A DNA stretch of 64,000 nucleotides from the sequence record ON000910.1. One strand, written 5' to 3'. The translations under genes were made by a program, and so were the position numbers. Below, piece after piece: positions 3,815-64,000 of the stretch. Position 1 is the first letter of the stretch. The number at the start of each line of letters is the position of its first letter. The notes under the pieces were generated by a model. The model was not told the DNA's origin. It did not search any database and saw only the letters and a program-made list of their open reading frames with translations.

Positions 3815-6800
3815 ATGTCAGAATTCCGCAGAGCATTTCGTGCGTCAGGTCTTGATGCAAGTGGTCAGAATGTCATTAACGTAGCAGACCCACGAGCAAA
3901 TGAATTGTTCGACGGTATTAACCAAGGCTACTTTATTGAAGAGAACACTGTTCAAGAGTATGACCCAACACGAGATCACTATAAAGTAGACTTTATCGTT
4001 GAGTTCAATCAACGTCTATACAAAAACATTACCGAAATCAATGCACCTGAACCTTTTGACTCGCAGAAGTGGCAGAAAATGCGTACCGACCCTGAATGGG
4101 AAGATACTGATTCATCGGTAGGCGCAAACGTCGGTGACTTCTTGTTGTTAACAGCAAGCTCGGCAATCACTATTACACTGCCTGAAACACCATTAACAGG
4201 TGACACAGTTACAATCAAAGACGGTAAAGGCGTTCTTACAACTTACCCTTGTACGATTGCAGCAGCGGGCGGCTTGACGATTCAACATTACGGCATTGAC
4301 GGTTCAATTGAGTCTAAACCGAGTATTTCATTCAATACCCCTAACAGCACTATATTCTTAGTGTACAACGGTATTGCATGGACATATCAGATCAATCAAG
4401 AGTTATACAATACGTATATTGACGACAGTCACCCAACTCAACAGGGTGGGTACTTATCAACTGGTGGTTATTTCACTAACGTTGGCGAGACAGTCACATA
4501 TGACGGTTCAGTTAAGAAAATTGCAATTTCTGTACCACTGAACCCGAACGTGGGCGATACAATTCATCTTAAAGATGTTGCGTATCTTGAGAATCAAACG
4601 TCGATTCAAATCGGTGTGAACCCGACTGCTACGGGTCAGGTTATTCAAGACCCTATTTCAGGCGAACGTAGTTCTGTTATCAGTCTTGATACTATCGGCG
4701 GCGCTGATATCACATTTATCGATGATAACGGTACTGGCGTATGGGTAATCACAATCGCGAACAACCCGCATTTATGGAACTATGTCGGGGATTCAAGCGC
4801 GGTTGAATTGAAGCCTCGTTCTCGTTACGCTATCGAAATCGCAGATGCTGTTCCTGCAATGACGATCACACTACCAGAAAAACCAGCCGATGGTGACTGG
4901 ATTGAGATCTCACACAACAAAACAGCTCATAAGAAAGTAACGATTCAAGTTCACCCGAATTTCGGTGATGATGACCCAGGTCACGGCCCCGATGAATACA
5001 AAGTATTCTTGGACTTTGAAACATATCGTTATCAAAAATACCGTCATTACGTTGATTTCGTTCCATTCTTCGTTGAATCATTCGAAATTAGTGATTATGA
5101 CAGCGGTTATTCACTAGTTCTATACTACGACGCGAGTCGTAAAGTATGGTCGTTCGGTAACATCGCGACTCGTATCGATATCGCTGATGAACTATACCGT
5201 AAACGCCCGGGTATCGTGCCATTAGCTGACCCAACGGAAGCTCTAGCACACGGGATTGAATATGCGCACCCTGAAGATGCAGCAGACCCTTGGGCTGATC
5301 AAAACCCACTGAAAGATCACGTAATCACGGTAGAGACGCTTGACGCTCGTCGTGCAGGTGAACAGCAAGTCGGTATGGCTCGTGTTGCTACTCTTGGAAC
5401 TGATGAAGCTCTTGAAGAATCGCGTTCTGGTACGTTTGTTCGTTACCCAGATACAAACTTCAGACATGATCTGTTCATAACACCACGTAGCTTGAATGCG
5501 CGTACAGCAACTGAAACACGTCGCGGTGTAGTTGAAATCGCAACTCAAAACGAGACGCGAAGCACAACTAACGATGTTCAAGTTCTAACACCGATGAAAT
5601 TCCACGCTGCACAAGCTGAAGAAGATCTAACAGGTGTTGCGAAACTAGTCGAAGCGTCGAACAACATCAATGCTGGTGGTATTGTTACATCAACAGCGAA
5701 TATGCGTTCAGACCGTTCAGTAAATGGTCTTGACAATACAGTATATGATAAAACTGATCATCTGCGTATCGTAACGCCAAAAATGCTTGATGAGTATCGT
5801 GCTACAGAGAATCAACCTGGTACATTATGGGTTGCTAAGAGCAGTGAACTTCGCATCAACGACTCAACAGTTGATAACGCGATCATCACGCCTAAGAAAT
5901 TAGCAGCGTGGAAAGCAAGCTCAACGGTTCGTGGTATTGCTCGTTCTGCCACACAGTCTGAAGCAAATGCAACAACAGGAACTGGTGAATCGTGGACAAC
6001 AGTCTTCATCACACCAGAAACGTTGAATAGCAGAACAGCAACTGAATCACGTCGTGGTGTTGCGGAAATCGCAACTCAAACTGAAGTTGACTCAGGGACA
6101 GACGATACTCGTATTGTTTCACCACTTAAACTGAAGACATGGCTTGATCGTGATCATTTCGTGACAGCAGGAACAGATGGTCTATCGCATACTGGTACAG
6201 TGTGGGGCGACGTTACATTCAGCATCGCGTCAGCGACTGAAACACAACGTGGTACACTACAAGTTGCGACTCAAGTAGAAGCGAATGCCCAAGCTGGTGC
6301 GCTTGATGATGTAATCATCACACCACAGAAGTTAAATGCGCGTCGTGCTACAGAAAATCAAACGGGTATCGTGCGTCTTGCGACTCAAGCTGAAGTCGAA
6401 GCAGCGACAGCTAGTAATGAAATTGTTGTTACTCCGAGTGATTTGCTACACTGGACTCGTTACTCTGACAGCTCACGTGCAAATGAAAGTCGTTATGGTA
6501 ACGTACAAATCGCAACACCAGCAGAAACATTTGTTGGTAACAGTACAGACGGTTCAACACAAGCGTATACGTCGTACTTGCGTGTTCCATATGCAGTTTC
6601 ACCTTACGGTCTGCATTATGCATTGCGCAACTACTTACCGCTAAACGCTAAAGCTGATGACTCAGAATTACTAGATGGCTTGAACAGTACACAATTTGCA
6701 CGTCGTGACATCGACCAAACAATCAATGGCACGTATACGTTTAGTGGCGAATTCGTGCAAACGAAAGGTGGCGGTTATTTCTTAGTTGCAAACCCAACGA

Positions 6801-10224: not shown

Positions 10225-10248
10225 AAGAGCCCTTCGGGGCTTTTTTTA
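10225..10248 (+). terminator. Intrinsic terminator after gene 35
   Basis: GAGCCC-TTCG-GGGCTT stem with UUCG loop, then a T run. Confidence 0.88.
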
Positions 10249-10251
10249 TAC

Positions 10252-10343
10252 GCGAAGCGAAAAACGGTAAGAGGCGGAAAAATTCCGTCTCATCTTAGTA
10301 GTATTAGTGGTTTTAGTGATATTAGAAGTATTAGAGGGATTAG
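10252..10343 (+). repeat. Hairpin plus 6x TTAG (9-bp period) element, copy 1
   Basis: GCGAAGCG at 10252; hairpin 10271-10291; TTAG at 10295, 10304, 10313, 10322, 10331, 10340. Confidence 0.95.
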
Positions 10344-10344
10344 T

Positions 10345-10374
10345 GTTTAAGCAACCAATGATGAAATGTATACT
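10345..10374 (+). promoter_or_regulatory. Putative promoter GTTTAA-N18-TATACT upstream of uvsY
   Basis: -35-like GTTTAA 10345-10350; -10 TATACT 10369-10374. Confidence 0.6.
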
Positions 10375-10392: not shown

Positions 10393-10806
10393 ATGAAGCT
10401 ACAAGATTTAAAAATTGAATATCACGAAGACGTGAAAATTGACACAACTGCTTTAGAAACAGCAGCTATTCGAATTCCCGTTCTTCATGCGAAGTGGCTT
10501 GCATACCGAGCCGATGCAAGACAACTACTTATCAAAGCTGAAATGAAAATGGAAGCTGTGAGAAAAGACCGCTGGCTCTTTTATAGCGGCAAACATGACG
10601 ATGAAGTTTGTGATTTCATCGTAGAAAAGAGTGAAATGAAATATGCTCTTGCGGGTGATGAATATCTTCAACGTGCAATTGCTACTTTTCAACACATGAA
10701 AGATGTGTTATCATTCATCGAAGAAGCTTTGAAAGGCATTAGTCAAATGGGCTTCACAATCAAACACATTATTGACAACAGAAAAATTGAGAGTGGTATA
10801 GTATGA
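10393..10806 (+). CDS. uvsY: Recombination mediator UvsY
   Basis: MKLQDL...EDVKIDTT.LE..A..IP.L.AKW...YSGK...KSEMK...GDE; 137 aa as in T4. Confidence 0.93.
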   Translation: MKLQDLKIEYHEDVKIDTTALETAAIRIPVLHAKWLAYRADARQLLIKAEMKMEAVRKDRWLFYSGKHDDEVCDFIVEKSEMKYALAGDEYLQRAIATFQHMKDVLSFIEEALKGISQMGFTIKHIIDNRKIESGIV

Positions 10807-17680: not shown

Positions 17681-17706
17681 AAAAAGCGCATTTTTGCGCT
17701 TTTTTT
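17681..17706 (+). terminator. Intrinsic terminator
   Basis: AAAAAGCGCA-TTTT-TGCGCTTTTT followed by Ts. Confidence 0.85.
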
Positions 17707-17717
17707 GTATCTATTGG

Positions 17718-35826: not shown

Positions 35827-37509
35827 TTATACTTTTAGTACAAATGATTCATGGTCGATAGTAACGTTAGCCGCTGTGCTAGCCAATACTCGAATCTCAC
35901 TCAAGTCATCTAGATTCGCAACGTTAGTGATTGTAACTGGAGTAACTTGGTTTGCACGAAGCGTACGTGTTTTCTCGATTGATGAGCTTGTGCCGTTATC
36001 ATGGTCGAAATCAATTCGAATCGTGATTGTAGTGTTTATCGGTGAAACAACAACCCAGTGAATAGACATCGTTTTGCTCAGTGATAGACCGTTACGTGTC
36101 AATACACCCCCTGCATACGTGTAGCCACTTACATCTGTATCAACGTTGAATAAACTAAACACATCTGTCGGAGTAGTTGTAAGATCAACAGTGCTCGGGG
36201 TATCAGAAGTCAACAATGCATGATCAAGCTGTGATTCGAGTTCTAGAACACGCGCACGTAAGGTGCCCACTTCACTATCACTCTGACCAACTACAGCCAA
36301 TAGACCGTCAACGTCTGCTTGAGCAGAATCAACCAAACCACGGTTTTCTTGAATTGTGTACCATGCAGTAAATTCAACGGGGTTTGTACGCTCACCTAGA
36401 CTAGACTCAAGCTGTGACACTCTGTAAGACACTGTGCCAGTTTCTGCGTCAGTAGCCCCTAAACGACCCCACAAGCTATTAATATCGTCGTTAAACGTCG
36501 ATAGACGAGCTTTCATGCTACCAGAGTACACGTCACCTACTGCGTATGATCCGATATCAGTTGACACTTCAATATATAAGTTAGTAACGGCGCCAATCTG
36601 TGACTGATTATCTGCAATTGTAACTTCATTCGCGCTAACGCGATCAAGTAGACCTGTAGTCGGTGTCTCAACTTCCTGTTGTAATAATGCAATATCTGAT
36701 GCATTGTCTGAAATAGAACTTTCAGCATCATCAAGACGAAGATACACGGGACGAGCAGGGTCGGCATCTGCCGTTTCACCTAGTTCATCACGAATCTGAT
36801 CAACAGAACCAACTTGCGAGTTTTGCTCTAGTTCGTATAAACGACCGTTGATTGAAAGCGGGATTGCGTTCTCGCCGATTTCAGCGTTGATCGTAGCTGT
36901 TTTGTTGTACAGATCTTCAATCTGATATTTCATACCAGTTGGGTTTGTACTAGGCGATGGGTTGCCATTGACATCGTAGTTACGATCATTACCAATACGA
37001 CGCTTGATGAAATATAGGTCTTTACGAACTGTATCGTTGTTTTCAACTTCGTTTGGAATATCTAGGCTGTTACGAACACCAATATCTGCTTCAACATCTT
37101 CGATGCCTTTATGCAGACCTGTTGCAAGTACGTCAACACTACTCGGTACACCGATGTCATCAATGACGTTAGTCATTTGACCTTCAAGTACATCAATATC
37201 AAACTCGTTTTGTGACACACGAGAACCCAAGTTAGCGTCACCGCCACCTGTCAGTTCGTTAACAGTATCAACAAGTTCTTCAATTGCGCTTTGCTGTGCT
37301 TTTGTGTTGTAATGAGAGTTTAGAACGTTTTCTTGAATCTGTACTCCTGCGCGGTTTAATACACCGTCTGAAGTCGTGTCACCAGAAGCACCGTTGATGC
37401 TTTCACCGTTCTTAGCCCAATTGATTCGAGTCTGATCGGGACGTTGAGAAGGATCTGGTTGACCATTTACATATCTAAGCTCTTCAATGATAGGCTTTTG
37501 AATTGTCAT
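35827..37509 (-). CDS. wac: Fibritin (whisker/collar fibre)
   Basis: N-terminal L.YVNGQP..SQ.RINW.KNGE.INGAS...G.LNR..VQIQ.N; segmented coiled coil; start trimmed to 37509; late promoter at 37550-37557. Confidence 0.88.
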   Translation of the reverse strand: MTIQKPIIEELRYVNGQPDPSQRPDQTRINWAKNGESINGASGDTTSDGVLNRAGVQIQENVLNSHYNTKAQQSAIEELVDTVNELTGGGDANLGSRVSQNEFDIDVLEGQMTNVIDDIGVPSSVDVLATGLHKGIEDVEADIGVRNSLDIPNEVENNDTVRKDLYFIKRRIGNDRNYDVNGNPSPSTNPTGMKYQIEDLYNKTATINAEIGENAIPLSINGRLYELEQNSQVGSVDQIRDELGETADADPARPVYLRLDDAESSISDNASDIALLQQEVETPTTGLLDRVSANEVTIADNQSQIGAVTNLYIEVSTDIGSYAVGDVYSGSMKARLSTFNDDINSLWGRLGATDAETGTVSYRVSQLESSLGERTNPVEFTAWYTIQENRGLVDSAQADVDGLLAVVGQSDSEVGTLRARVLELESQLDHALLTSDTPSTVDLTTTPTDVFSLFNVDTDVSGYTYAGGVLTRNGLSLSKTMSIHWVVVSPINTTITIRIDFDHDNGTSSSIEKTRTLRANQVTPVTITNVANLDDLSEIRVLASTAANVTIDHESFVLKV

Positions 37510-37597
37510 TTTTTGTTCCCTTGTATTGTAAATGAACATAGCTTACTACTATTTATAGCAATACAAAGAAACAGAGAGGGAATGTCTTTATGTGTTA

Positions 37598-37627
37598 ATA
37601 ATAGCAAGCATATTCATGGTATTAAAC
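37598..37627 (-). promoter_or_regulatory. Putative promoter GTTTAA-N18-TATTAT downstream of repeat copy 2
   Basis: Minus strand reads CGTGTTTAATACCATGAATATGCTTGCTATTAT. Confidence 0.55.
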
Positions 37628-37639
37628 ACGTATTTAATA

Positions 37640-37732
37640 CTAATCATACTAATACTTCTAATATCACTAAAACCACTAATACTACTAAGATGAGACGGAA
37701 TTTTTCCGCCTCTTGCCATTTCTTCGCTGCGC
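37640..37732 (-). repeat. Hairpin plus 6x TTAG (9-bp period) element, copy 2 (inverted)
   Basis: CTAA at 37640, 37649, 37658, 37667, 37676, 37685; 37649-37714 is the exact reverse complement of 10269-10334. Confidence 0.95.
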
Positions 37733-37738
37733 TAATAC

Positions 37739-37769
37739 AAAAAAAAGGGTGAGAAATCAATCTCACCCG
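37739..37769 (-). terminator. Terminator after the short tail fibre genes
   Basis: Minus strand: GGGTGAGA-loop-TCTCACCC followed by a T run. Confidence 0.82.
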
Positions 37770-37808
37770 TTTATTAGCATTGACTTTCAAGCTATAATAT
37801 GCTTGTCT

Positions 37809-39236
37809 TTATGCAGTTCTTTCCCACATGTAAACAGTATAGTATGGCTGTACGTTATTATGTGGTTGACCACCACCTTCTGGTGATGAGTAATACAAGT
37901 AGTTGTCGTTATCAGTGCGACCTGAACCTGGGTTGCTTCTACCATATTCGTATGCAACTCCAAACCCTAGTCCGTTGCCACCGTAAGTCCAACGATCACC
38001 CCAACCCGCGTGTTTGTGAGTTGGCATTGTTTCTTCAGTTAAGATAACTTCGTATTCACCACCTGTTTGTCTTACGTTGAATGTTCTACCACCATGTGTA
38101 CCTTCAGATACAAGCACGCGACCTTCTGCAATTCTAGACCATGTTCCGCCGAATAGCGTAGCTGGTGATGTAGATTCAAGTGACATGTAAATAGCACCAA
38201 CAGGGTACATATTCAACATAGCTGATGATTCAATCAGACCATTTGTCATTAACTGAGTACCACTTACAGATTGAACATCGTCAATTTTCAATGTACCAGT
38301 TACTGTCCCGCCTGAAACCCCAATCTTTTCATTATTCAACTTATAACCCATTGCAGCACTTAGTGCTTGAGTCGCGTCGTTTGTTGTTAGATTGTTTGCT
38401 AGTTTCGCAACACCGACACGTGAGCTAGTCGCAGTGAATAAATCTAATGTACCGACTGTGACTGCATGGTCATTAGATGTACGCGCATTTGCAACTGTTG
38501 AGTTCGGTAGATAGAAACCTGCCTTTCTCGTAGTTGTCGCTGTGCGTTCATTGAATCGATACGGTGAAATTGCTAGATTGTTTTCTGATGCTGATGTGCT
38601 GTTTACTTCAGTTGCATTTGCTAATCGAATCAACCCTTTCGTCGTTTCTGTAGCATCTGATGCGGTAGTATTCGCCCACACGTCAAGCATTTCCTTAACT
38701 CGCTGTGGGGTCATCGCTACGCTATTAGATAATGTACCAGTCGTCGTTGCTTGTGCATATGTCGCTAGCCGTACAGCACCCGGCGAAGATTCAGTTGCAT
38801 AGAAACGAGTATTCAACGCGTAGTTCAATGTTTTAAGCGTGAATGCATGTTTCTGTGCTTCTTCTACTGCGGCTGTCGGGTCAATGTTATCAATCGTGCT
38901 GTTTGTAATCAGCTTCACAAAACCGTATTGAAGTTCTGTTGCAGTCGCGTGATTTTCCATCCAATAATTTAATGCAGATGGTGTCACCGCGCTTGTGTTA
39001 TTAAGCTCATCTGCGACTGCTGCATTATCACTTAACAATGTAATACCCGCGACAGATGTTGATGCTATAGGGTAATCGGGTAATGGTTGAAGTGCATGAG
39101 CTTGTACAAGCTCAAGACACGTTTGGAGATCGTTATTACCCCCAGTAAGACCATCAAAGGAAGTACCTTCGACTTCAACTGTAACCGTACCCGCATCGTC
39201 AATCACGTGATTGAAAATTTGAGTTCCTTTGCTCAT
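37809..39236 (-). CDS. gp12: Short tail fibre gp12-like, paralogue B
   Basis: ATETTKGLIRLA repeats, collar YPVGAIY...P..LFGGTW, His motif PTHKHAGWG, PHNNVQPYY.VY.W.R. Confidence 0.85.
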   Translation of the reverse strand: MSKGTQIFNHVIDDAGTVTVEVEGTSFDGLTGGNNDLQTCLELVQAHALQPLPDYPIASTSVAGITLLSDNAAVADELNNTSAVTPSALNYWMENHATATELQYGFVKLITNSTIDNIDPTAAVEEAQKHAFTLKTLNYALNTRFYATESSPGAVRLATYAQATTTGTLSNSVAMTPQRVKEMLDVWANTTASDATETTKGLIRLANATEVNSTSASENNLAISPYRFNERTATTTRKAGFYLPNSTVANARTSNDHAVTVGTLDLFTATSSRVGVAKLANNLTTNDATQALSAAMGYKLNNEKIGVSGGTVTGTLKIDDVQSVSGTQLMTNGLIESSAMLNMYPVGAIYMSLESTSPATLFGGTWSRIAEGRVLVSEGTHGGRTFNVRQTGGEYEVILTEETMPTHKHAGWGDRWTYGGNGLGFGVAYEYGRSNPGSGRTDNDNYLYYSSPEGGGQPHNNVQPYYTVYMWERTA

Positions 39237-40771
39237 TTAACTCGTCTCCAAATGTAAACTGGGTAGTATGGCATCATATTCTCATGCGGCTCATTACCAC
39301 CAACTGCTTCGTTGTAATACATGTAATTATCACGATCAGTAGATTTCGAACCGGGATTATTACGCGAACCTGTTATACCGAATCTCCAGTAACTGACAGT
39401 ATTATATTCATCACACGTATATGTTACACCATACGGGCTTCGATGAGTTTCGTAGCGAATACACCCCTCGCGTGAGCCTGTATATGCTTCACCCCAACCT
39501 GCATGTTGGTGTTGTGGTAAATTACTCTCGTATAACTGAACACGGTCGATGTCACTAAACGAACCCGCTGCATAATATCTGCGAGTGAACCCATCATCAC
39601 CGATACCCTGCCCAATCATAGTTCGACCTGCTCTCATCTTATACCATACGCCACCGAAAATCTCATTCGGGTCAACTGATGAAGTACAGTGAAAAATACT
39701 ACCAACAGGGCGCCCTTCAAGACCGATCTTCGCGTCTAATTGATTGTTCGGGAACATTTCCCTCTGCTCTTGAACAGTTGTGTAATATGTTCCGCCATAA
39801 CTGCTCTGCTTTTGACGAGAAATGATGTTTGTGTAAATGTTGTCACATTTCAAAACACCCGTAATTGTCCCACCGTCTGGGCCTAATAGTGTATTCAAAT
39901 CAACGCCAAGTGCAGCACTTGTTGCTTTTGTTGAGTCGTTTACATACGAGCTTGGTAGTTCAAAGAACCCGTGTTTAGTCGGTGTCGCTATTAGATTGTC
40001 GATTGTACCGGGAGTTATAGCATATTCATCTGAATCGCTTGCATTGCGGTCATAGTTGTTCTGTGTTAATTTGAATGCACCACGCTTAGATGTCGTCGCT
40101 TTAACGTAATTAAGACCTTTAACTGTAATTGCAATCGAACCGTCTGATTTATACCCGTCTCGTTCTGCTACAGTACGAAGCACACCCGTGTATGTTTCTG
40201 TCGCTTGAGCCCAAGGGTTTGGTATCTCTGCTTTAATTAAGTTCCACGTTCTAAGTGGAGAAATGAATCGGTCAGGGTTATATGCTAAAGTTTCGCTTAG
40301 ATTTGCAAACTCAGCAAAACCTTGTGATTCGTTTGTTGTGTCATCTGCTAGTGCATTACGAGTCGTCATCATTTCATTTAGACGGCGATATGACAGCAAA
40401 CGACTTGCATCTGATGACGAATATGTTCTTGTCAAATCAGTATTACGCAATTCTTGTAGATTACCTAACTGAGTACTGGTTGCTGGAGACACGAACTGGT
40501 CAACCCCGTCTAGTGACGCTGGTGTGATTACAGTTAATAAGTCGTCAAGTGCATTAGCTTCTGCTTGAGTTGCGTACTCAACAATACCAACCTCAGTCGT
40601 TGTCGCATACGGAAGTGACGGAAGTGGTGCTAATGCGCTATCGTCAAATAGCTCCATTATACTCTGCACATCACCGCCTGACTCAAACGCTGAACCAGGC
40701 GATGTGAAGGGCTGTAGGTAAACATATTGCGCTGCATCACTAGCGTGCGTGAATATGTTTGTTCCTGACAT
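39233..40771 (-). CDS. gp12: Short tail fibre gp12-like, paralogue A
   Basis: N-terminal TH.SD.AQYV, YATTTEVGIV.YAT repeats, collar PVGSIF...P..IFGGVW, PQHQHAGWG, PHENM.PYY.VY.W.R. Confidence 0.8.
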   Translation of the reverse strand: MSGTNIFTHASDAAQYVYLQPFTSPGSAFESGGDVQSIMELFDDSALAPLPSLPYATTTEVGIVEYATQAEANALDDLLTVITPASLDGVDQFVSPATSTQLGNLQELRNTDLTRTYSSSDASRLLSYRRLNEMMTTRNALADDTTNESQGFAEFANLSETLAYNPDRFISPLRTWNLIKAEIPNPWAQATETYTGVLRTVAERDGYKSDGSIAITVKGLNYVKATTSKRGAFKLTQNNYDRNASDSDEYAITPGTIDNLIATPTKHGFFELPSSYVNDSTKATSAALGVDLNTLLGPDGGTITGVLKCDNIYTNIISRQKQSSYGGTYYTTVQEQREMFPNNQLDAKIGLEGRPVGSIFHCTSSVDPNEIFGGVWYKMRAGRTMIGQGIGDDGFTRRYYAAGSFSDIDRVQLYESNLPQHQHAGWGEAYTGSREGCIRYETHRSPYGVTYTCDEYNTVSYWRFGITGSRNNPGSKSTDRDNYMYYNEAVGGNEPHENMMPYYPVYIWRRVK

Positions 40772-63518: not shown

Positions 63519-63543
63519 AAGCCCCTTACGGGGCTTTTTTTGT
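63519..63543 (+). terminator. Terminator after gene 3
   Basis: AAGCCCC-TTAC-GGGGCTT followed by a T run. Confidence 0.85.
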
Positions 63544-63556
63544 ATCTGAATCTAGA

Positions 63557-63651
63557 GCGAAGCGGCAGAATTTGGTGTGAGGCCCAAAAATTGGGCATCA
63601 TCTTAGTAGTATTAGTAGTTTTAGTGAAGTTAGAGGTATTAGTAATATTAG
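63557..63651 (+). repeat. Hairpin plus 6x TTAG (9-bp period) element, copy 3 (diverged)
   Basis: GCGAAGCG at 63557; hairpin 63579-63599; TTAG at 63603, 63612, 63621, 63630, 63639, 63648. Confidence 0.93.
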
Positions 63652-63673
63652 AGAATAGGCACCTTGTCGCATT

Positions 63674-63703
63674 GTTTAGAAACCACCAGATCTGTCGTAT
63701 AAT
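63674..63703 (+). promoter_or_regulatory. Putative promoter GTTTAG-N18-TATAAT upstream of gene 1
   Basis: -35-like 63674-63679; -10 63698-63703. Confidence 0.62.
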
Positions 63704-63739: not shown

Positions 63740-64000
63740 ATGATTATAGGAATCAATGGACAAAAGCGTTCAGGGAAAGATACCCTTGCTGCTGCCATTA
63801 AAAAATCTCATAGTGATAGCACTTACATTTACAAATTTGCCGACCCGATTAAAGAAGGGTTGTTCATTGGGTTAAAAGAATATGGCTATGATTATGAAGA
63901 CATAGACGGTCAAACAGATTGTGACCGCGAAGTTCCAGTATTTACGTTAGACGAAGCAATTGAACTTGTATTAAAGTGCTGTGACTACGCAAACGTAGAT
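63740..64000 (+). CDS. gp1: Deoxynucleoside monophosphate kinase gp1 (runs off the window)
   Basis: Hand-translated: MIIGINGQKRSGKDTLAAAI...YKFADPIKE, P-loop and FADP motif; follows gene 3 as in T4. Confidence 0.92.
   Translation, partial: MIIGINGQKRSGKDTLAAAIKKSHSDSTYIYKFADPIKEGLFIGLKEYGYDYEDIDGQTDCDREVPVFTLDEAIELVLKCCDYANVD

Follow-up and report, generated by a model that had tools for sequence, protein, structure and literature searches.

A six-copy iteron-like module beside early promoters of KVP40-like phages and its possible link to replication priming

The first 64 kb of Vibrio phage XZ1 (ON000910.1; 64,000 nt, hereafter the window), a KVP40-like T4-type myovirus of the genus Schizotequatrovirus, contain an interval ahead of the fibritin gene wac (positions 37598–37769) that proved to be the promoter-proximal half of one copy of a module of about 100 nt. 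Six copies of this module are present per genome, each between an intrinsic terminator and a sigma70 promoter of the T4 early type. The reading that we favour, tentatively and as possible rather than probable, is that the module is a protein-bound iteron array that may mark six primer or origin promoters. The analysis was computational, using sequence comparison, folding, motif scans and the literature, from which function is inferred; copies beyond the window were read in the complete genomes of ValKK3 and KVP40. Window positions 37300–38000 match XZ1 itself at 100% with unchanged coordinates and share 99.9% identity with ValKK3 and 88% with KVP40, and in both of the latter genomes the interval sits between the second short-tail-fibre gene (12-2) and wac.

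Read along the strand of the flanking genes, which is the orientation of every copy, the intrinsic terminator of the upstream gene is followed by a conserved motif of the form GCGNAGC (AGCGAAGCG; GCGCAGC in the wac copy), about 10 variable nt, a palindrome with a 9-bp stem and an invariant AAAAATT centre, the trinucleotide ATC and six head-to-tail direct units of 9 bp. In the aligned copies a further 0–27 nt lead to the sigma70-type promoter and the next gene. The wac copy (copy 2) is laid out as follows.

37737–37768, minus strand: intrinsic terminator of gene 12-2, a stem-loop (37768–37747) and then a run of eight T; the 12-2 open reading frame (ORF) ends at 37809
37722–37733, minus strand: GCGNAGC mini-hairpin motif, in its copy-2 version AGCGCAGCGAAG, from alignments
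37692–37712, minus strand: palindrome GAGGCGGAA-AAA-TTCCGTCTC, from DNA folding
37635–37688, minus strand: six-unit TTAG array, its sense strand almost free of C, from the unit alignment
37649–37714, no strand assigned: 66-bp identical stretch, a gene-conversion tract, from comparison with 10269–10334

The units follow the consensus TTAG[T/A/G]RNWW. In a logo of 105 units the TTAG core is essentially invariant and positions 5–9 vary (T>A>G, purine, any base, T>A, A>T), with C nearly absent. Runs of three TTAG-N5 units were counted 12 times in the window, always within its three module copies, compared to none expected from 100 shuffles, which excludes chance. No partial, decayed or extra arrays were found outside the modules in the complete ValKK3 and KVP40 genomes, where none would be expected by chance. 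The other two copies of the window precede uvsY and gene 1, which encodes a deoxynucleoside monophosphate (dNMP) kinase.

10251–10348, plus strand: copy 1, between gene 35 and uvsY (GCGAAGC 10252–10258, hairpin 10271–10291, units 10295–10348)
10346–10374, plus strand: copy 1 promoter, TTTAAG-17-TATACT, 18 nt before the uvsY ATG at 10393
63556–63656, plus strand: copy 3, between gene 3 and gene 1 (hairpin variant GAGGCCCAA-AAA-TTGGGCATC 63579–63599, units 63603–63656)
63675–63703, plus strand: copy 3 promoter, TTTAGA-17-TATAAT; the gene 1 ATG is at 63740

The copy 1 promoter scores below the threshold of a simple promoter scan, and the repeat search reports copy 3 as a direct copy at about 63574–63661. 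Near-identical bidirectional terminators (A-run, GC stem, T-run, GTAT) lie at 10225–10250, 17684–17712 and 63519–63547, two of them preceding copies 1 and 3.

In ValKK3 the six copies lie upstream of uvsY, wac, gene 1, the glutaredoxin gene nrdH and two ORFs without known function. A covariance model built from these copies found exactly six in KVP40, at orthologous sites, and blastn placed the module at six places in nearly all related genomes. At least one copy was present in each further relative examined, namely nt-1 (a different genus; copies at uvsY and wac), 6E35.1a and F86 (copy at wac), 1.081.O and four metagenome contigs. Within IMG/VR the KVP40-like group is represented by KVP40 and VH7D alone. 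In 1.081.O two complete modules stand in tandem before gene 1 (1480–1599 and 1643–1763 of L047), 163 bp apart and with 3 differences; here the entire unit, AGCGAAGCG through the last TTAG unit, has been duplicated locally. In the Aeromonas phage AsFcp_1, also T4-type, uvsY directly follows coding sequence and no module stands before it, and in T4 gene 12 overlaps wac, leaving no intergenic region between them. An exact scan for the signature across 185,579 bacterial and archaeal genomes returned 9 hits in unrelated taxa, none of them Vibrio. A host origin of the module was rejected on this basis, as the hits are at chance level and none scored with the module model. Long tandem arrays of the TTAGTAGTA type that lack the palindrome were seen in two seemingly unrelated IMG/VR contigs with a GC content of about 0.22 (L019, 6230–6320; L010, 10687–10749) and may be coding repeats or a distant analogue. 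The module sequence appears in no searchable paper; the figures and supplements of the papers on PeSL cassettes (discussed below) and the KVP40 genome paper (PMC180978) lay outside this search and may list the six sites as PeSLs.

Folding of the sense strand, as single-stranded DNA (ssDNA) or RNA, gave the 9-bp stem with an AAA loop and left the array unpaired. Two kinds of change in the stem bear on whether the structure itself is selected. In 4 of 27 distinct copies the upper stem has changed from GG/CC to CC/GG, two pairs together, and at one further pair 14 copies have G-T and 10 have G-C, G-T being tolerated on the sense strand only. Such compensatory and GU-tolerant changes, together with the unstructured and nearly C-free array, would suit an element acting as RNA or ssDNA, such as a nut-like site bound by a protein on read-through RNA, a G-free Rho-loading tract on the antisense strand or a single-strand priming signal. 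For the nut-like version the layout would be a conserved 9-mer, a spacer, a GC stem with an A-rich loop and then an unstructured UUAG tract, which resembles lambda boxA-boxB. However, with a strong intrinsic terminator before it and the promoter after it, the module would be transcribed by read-through only. The covariation traces essentially to one change spread by conversion, so that the evidence for a structural constraint on the hairpin is real but thin; moreover, the lower stem is unpaired in half of the copies and the stem is broken in one metagenome copy. No conserved antisense promoter was found, and a search of Rfam at permissive E-values gave no match (best 17.5 bits against a threshold of 50, E >4). 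We therefore regard an RNA or ssDNA element as improbable. Likenesses to Fis sites, DnaA trios, lambda nut, RNase E sites and Rho loading sites were also considered, none of them convincing.

The interval had first drawn attention through an inverted repeat. A script reproduced the exact match of the first-pass annotation, 37649–37714 being the reverse complement of 10269–10334 at 66 of 66 positions. The repeat search extended the pair to 89-nt arms (10262–10350 and 37633–37721) with 92% identity, 27,282 nt apart, and in an ungapped comparison similarity fell to noise beyond these arms, in agreement with the diverging flanks noted earlier. The third copy (63556–63678, plus strand), the anatomy of a hairpin plus six 9-bp units and the count of six copies per genome had been overlooked, and what was described as a two-copy duplication belongs to a conserved six-copy family.

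The first-pass annotation had ascribed the identity to recent duplication or gene conversion and proposed a comparison of the two copies in relatives, which was carried out over a 78-nt core for paralogues and orthologues alike. Orthologues of ValKK3 and KVP40 are usually the closest pairs (4 differences for wac, 4 for gene 1 and 5 for nrdH). The uvsY orthologues differ at 9 positions, as do the uvsY and wac copies of KVP40, while the uvsY and wac copies of ValKK3 differ at only 5, all in units 5–6. Similarly, the gp125 and gene 1 copies of the XZ1/ValKK3 lineage show 3 differences, compared to 8 between orthologues. The 66-nt stretch is identical between the uvsY and wac copies of XZ1 and ValKK3; in the close relative VH7D these copies still differ at 6 positions inside it, so that the identity is the product of recent conversion, and comparison with VH7D shows that units 3–4 of the XZ1 wac copy derive from the uvsY copy. 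In the XZ1/ValKK3 lineage these comparisons establish two conversion events, one between uvsY and wac and the other between gene 1 and gp125, and they show the 66/66 identity to be a young conversion tract. Of the two explanations offered earlier, gene conversion is thus upheld by the differing VH7D and KVP40 copies, and recent duplication is not.

Conversion among the copies, the tandem duplication in 1.081.O and the arrangement of terminator and early promoter described for PeSLs of nt-1 and KVP40 (PMC4122927) might suggest that the module is a mere passenger of a PeSL cassette, homogenised by conversion, whose sole role is to supply homology at which recombination and modular shuffling can take place; T4-type recombination needs less than 50 bp of homology (PMC2839356). 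This is unlikely, given that the six positions are orthologous between ValKK3 and KVP40, that orthologues are usually closer than paralogues and that the modules stand in conserved core regions with no indels nearby and with no extra, decayed or partial copies. Furthermore, drift in the spacers contrasts with invariance of the TTAG cores, which indicates purifying selection on the motif rather than homogenisation.

The inverted pair had also been proposed to mediate a 27-kb inversion. This is mechanistically possible, as the inverted arms (66 nt exact; 89 nt at 92%) are longer than the homology of about 50 bp required for recombination, and a crossover inside the module would leave each gene its own promoter. 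The inverted order was however not seen in about 50 sequenced relatives: 12 and wac adjoin without a break in 49 of 50 relatives, and 35 and uvsY do so in all relatives listed (30 of 51 records at ≥80% coverage). Inverted genomes, if formed, are neither fixed nor sequenced.

The promoter of the wac copy points toward wac, and the features downstream of it were resolved as follows.

37598–37626, minus strand: sigma70 early-type promoter (–35 TTTAAT 37626–37621, 17-nt spacer, TGn 37606–37604, –10 TATTAT 37603–37598)
37559–37573, minus strand: 5' arm of the leader hairpin, a pyrimidine-rich anti-Shine-Dalgarno tract, from RNA folding
37550–37557, minus strand: T4-type late promoter TATAAATA, in the hairpin loop, from sequence and folding
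37515–37529, minus strand: 3' arm of the leader hairpin, over the wac Shine-Dalgarno sequence (AAGGGA, 37522–37517), from RNA folding
35827–37509, minus strand: wac (fibritin) coding sequence, the annotated start being the second ATG (codon 37509–37507)

The GTTTAA-N18-TATTAT element of the first-pass annotation was located on the minus strand as described, its GTTTAA at 37627–37622, and both the late promoter of wac and the pyrimidine-rich tract are real; the promoter scan reads the site as TTAATA-16-TATTAT with TG, and the early start is predicted near 37591. The –35 region TGTTTA(A/G) and the extended –10 are kept in XZ1, KVP40, 6E35.1a, F86 and nt-1. The extended –10 has the form CTG(C/A)-TA-nn-AT (variants TATTAT, TAAAAT and TAGTAT), with changes at the weakly contacted middle positions alone, a substitution pattern characteristic of a working sigma70 promoter.

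A small protein gene over the module, the 43-aa ORF at 37588–37719 (minus strand), is highly improbable. The ORF is present, and the records of 6E35.1a, F86, PG216 and VH1_2019 have hypothetical proteins annotated across the module. However, its ATG is missing in the KVP40 wac copy and in the other five copies, it has no Shine-Dalgarno sequence and it lies upstream of the start site of the promoter. The annotated ORFs (37588–37719 of the window on the minus strand; L046, 1477–1593; L048, 1423–1626) vary between 38, 43 and 67 aa; such differing lengths and the missing KVP40 start make the GenBank gene calls over the module probably spurious. Coding potential was likewise rejected for the 43-aa sense ORF and a 25-aa hydrophobic antisense ORF, which are found in the XZ1/ValKK3 wac copy only, the starts being lost in the KVP40 orthologue and the paralogues.

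Folding of the early wac RNA gave a 15-bp helix between 37573–37559 and 37529–37515 (–19.3 kcal/mol, z = –3.15), whereas RNA starting after TATAAATA is unstructured (–2.5 kcal/mol, z = 0.09). The same masking fold was obtained for KVP40, 6E35.1a and F86 (–18.8 kcal/mol, z –2.6 to –2.9), with no covariation because the arms are invariant. Since the late promoter lies in the loop, late transcripts alone would be open for translation, and the early transcript is predicted not to be translatable into Wac. A comparable masking of the Shine-Dalgarno sequence in early transcripts has been described for T4 genes e, soc, 49 and I-TevI (PMC3014915). The claim that the sigma70 promoter is not needed for wac expression accords with this conserved mask, in which the wac Shine-Dalgarno sequence is paired to the pyrimidine tract. 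Given that both promoter and mask are conserved, selection appears to act on early transcription at wac for a purpose other than making Wac. Downstream of the early promoter, a search of wac and gene 13 found no intrinsic terminator, making a discrete small RNA, one of the two roles suggested by the first-pass annotation, unlikely. The other role, that of a replication primer, is a reasonable inference only.

It is this transcription without translation at wac, together with the even spacing of the six sites, the position of one copy at uvsY and the precedent of T4, that leads us to favour primer or origin promoters. On the circular map of KVP40 the gaps between the six sites are 43, 50, 54, 26, 28 and 42 kb, and those of ValKK3 are similar (26–55 kb over both genomes). 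Compared with six random points, the minimum gap (26 kb) has p = 0.006–0.007 and the gap uniformity p = 0.003–0.005 in a test conceived after the data had been seen, which detracts from the reading. T4 has at least five dispersed, promoter-driven origins, among them one at uvsY and oriE with an early promoter (PMC3016281; PMC2988021), and a module copy at uvsY occupies the position of T4 oriF. T4 oriE also has direct repeats, whose role is undefined (PMC3016281), and GCGNAGC sequences form unusually stable DNA mini-hairpins that recur at phage priming origins (PMC13037366). We propose that the TTAG array, with its invariant 4-bp cores and free spacers, may serve as a DNA platform for a putative sequence-specific protein and that the six evenly spaced units of module and promoter would act as sites of origin or priming. 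Early in infection the promoter next to each array would be used by host RNA polymerase, yielding an RNA, untranslated or with a short leader, that could become a primer or R-loop, as at T4 oriF(uvsY), oriG and oriE, while the iteron-bound protein and the two hairpin-prone motifs might help opening or primosome loading. The more specific claim that KVP40-like phages have six sequence-defined, evenly spaced origins, each composed of an iteron array, a palindrome and an early promoter, is slightly less likely still.

Several observations weigh against such a role in replication. The origins of T4 have no common motif (PMC3016281), and the searchable literature holds no replication or transcript data for KVP40-like phages. 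The array lies upstream of the promoter, outside the transcribed stretch in which the T4 unwinding element sits, and its units measure 9 bp compared to 17–22 bp in classical iterons. No initiator-like or regulator gene was found beside any copy, the flanking ORFs being without Pfam domain and belonging to PHROGs of unknown function, and GC skew shows no sign change at copy 2. The leader at wac is AT-rich, but the RNA from the wac promoter would be pyrimidine-rich, not of the kind that favours stable R-loops. Finally, ordinary gene expression explains five of the six promoters, each of them simply serving the following gene across a short leader.

A second explanation, nearly as likely as the first, is that the module is an operator array for transcription alone: a phage or host protein on the TTAG units, and perhaps on the palindrome, would time the adjacent sigma70 promoter, the six promoters forming a regulon that is possibly part of a replacement for the MotA middle mode in phages lacking MotA. 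Indeed, module and promoter always adjoin in the same relative orientation, and at uvsY and nrdH the last unit and the –35 overlap. The genes served mostly concern DNA or nucleotide metabolism (uvsY, dNMP kinase, glutaredoxin and an ORF upstream of a DNA methyltransferase), T4 uvsY is driven by a MotA-dependent middle promoter and KVP40 has AsiA and no recognisable MotA (PMC2988021); T4 gene 1 likewise has a MotA-box-like promoter. On the other hand, the distance from array to –35 is 0, 9, 20 or 27 bp, indicating no fixed helical phasing, nor does a period of 9 bp correspond to a helical repeat. Only six promoters are involved and none is that of a main replication gene, a gene regulon does not predict even genomic spacing, and the wac copy would control an untranslated transcript. 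We note that the spacer between T4 genes 3 and 1 contains TGCTTCA-N12-TATAAT, a middle promoter of the MotA-box type (1376–1424 of L071), where KVP40-like phages have copy 3.

T4 is the model for promoter-primed, multi-origin phage replication, yet no motif is common to its origins (PMC3016281). In the KVP40 group, a module present six times, under clear purifying selection and tied to early promoters, offers a mutable target through which the choice of replication start sites in T4-type phages could be addressed, or alternatively the timing of a promoter subset by phages with AsiA and no MotA (PMC2988021). Should the favoured reading in terms of origins be true, this would be the first T4-type group whose origins share a recognisable motif, and an iteron-binding initiator would be implied. 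The wac copy is a natural separation-of-function case, in which the promoter is kept and its RNA is blocked from translation. The picture of PeSLs is also refined, as some cassettes appear to be fixed functional landmarks, not shuffling hot spots, and yet exchange by conversion. In addition, several GenBank records carry a probably spurious gene over the module.

Two further features of the window lie apart from the module. Adjacent short-tail-fibre genes 12-1 and 12-2 (37809–39236 and 39233–40771, minus strand) take the place of the one gene 12 of T4. Within gene 34, for the proximal long tail fibre, there are three to four diverged repeats of 55–76 nt, 240–550 nt apart (5474–6389, plus strand), presumably repeated protein domains.

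Among the closest known systems is the PeSL (promoter-early stem-loop) of T4-type phages, including nt-1 and KVP40, a cassette of a terminator and an early promoter (Arbiol 2010, PMC2839356; Comeau 2014, PMC4122927). As each copy lies between an intrinsic terminator and a T4-early-type sigma70 promoter, the module would, judged by its sequence, be a PeSL-type cassette with an extra iteron array. Like a PeSL, it is intergenic, combines a terminator of A-run, G-rich stem and T-run with a sigma70 early promoter feeding the next gene, and is present in several copies per genome that recombine among themselves, here in the two gene-conversion events. The stem-loop form A3-4 G3-loop-C3 T3-4 is seen at 37768–37739 (minus strand; GGGTGAG...CTCACCC and T8) and in copies 1 and 3. 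Compared with the PeSL promoter TTGYVH-N17-TAWWAT, the –10 TATTAT fits, the spacer is 17 nt and the –35 TTTAAT agrees at 4 of 6 positions, while the promoter stands about 110 nt from the stem-loop with the module between. A Shine-Dalgarno sequence and start codon follow directly in copies 1 and 3, whereas at wac the late promoter and mask intervene. In the published PeSL text an AT-rich region alone separates stem-loop and promoter, the cassettes lie mainly in hyperplastic regions beside indels and the –35 is given as TTGYVH. Unlike this description, the module has about 100 nt of conserved extra sequence between terminator and promoter, which goes unmentioned in the text of PMC2839356 and PMC4122927. 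It further has a –35 of TTTAAT or TTTAAG, and exactly six copies at conserved core positions, away from hyperplastic regions and indels (12–wac contiguous in 49 of 50 relatives; sites orthologous between ValKK3 and KVP40).

With T4 oriF(uvsY), oriG(34) and oriE the module shares dispersed sites, one of them at uvsY, each with a promoter for host RNA polymerase. A T4 origin transcript need not serve translation, as is the case for the wac copy, and oriE resembles the module in having an early promoter and direct repeats (PMC3016281). The T4 origins have no shared motif, whereas the six sites of the KVP40 group share about 80 nt; oriF and oriG also depend on MotA for their middle promoters and have an unwinding element of about 50 bp downstream, whereas the module promoter has the –35/–10 sigma70 form with no TGCTT box. 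The oriE 'iterons' were examined as possible relatives and rejected, being six copies of a 24-nt period, coding repeats of gene 5 with a sequence unrelated to the TTAG units; they lie at T4 79402–79569 (5403–5570 of L071), beside the annotated oriE at 79355.

Iteron arrays are found at plasmid and lambdoid origins, and short tandem operator arrays are bound by ribbon-helix-helix proteins. Like both, the module places a head-to-tail series of five to six repeats, constant in the core and free in the spacers, beside a palindrome and a promoter. It differs from them in its 9-bp unit, in having no cognate initiator or repressor gene in cis and in belonging to a lytic T4-type phage; a classical iteron origin would have repeats of 17–22 bp and an initiator in cis, whereas here 9-bp units are flanked by ORFs without Pfam domain.

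The wac leader, finally, compares with the masks of T4 genes e, soc, 49 and I-TevI, on whose list wac does not appear (PMC3014915). It is unlike them in that the masked gene is wac and the upstream promoter lies directly ahead, with no early gene between. As in T4, the Shine-Dalgarno sequence is paired in a helix whose 5' arm lies upstream of the TATAAATA late promoter, this promoter stands between the two arms, and late transcripts, lacking the 5' arm, would have an open leader and be translated.

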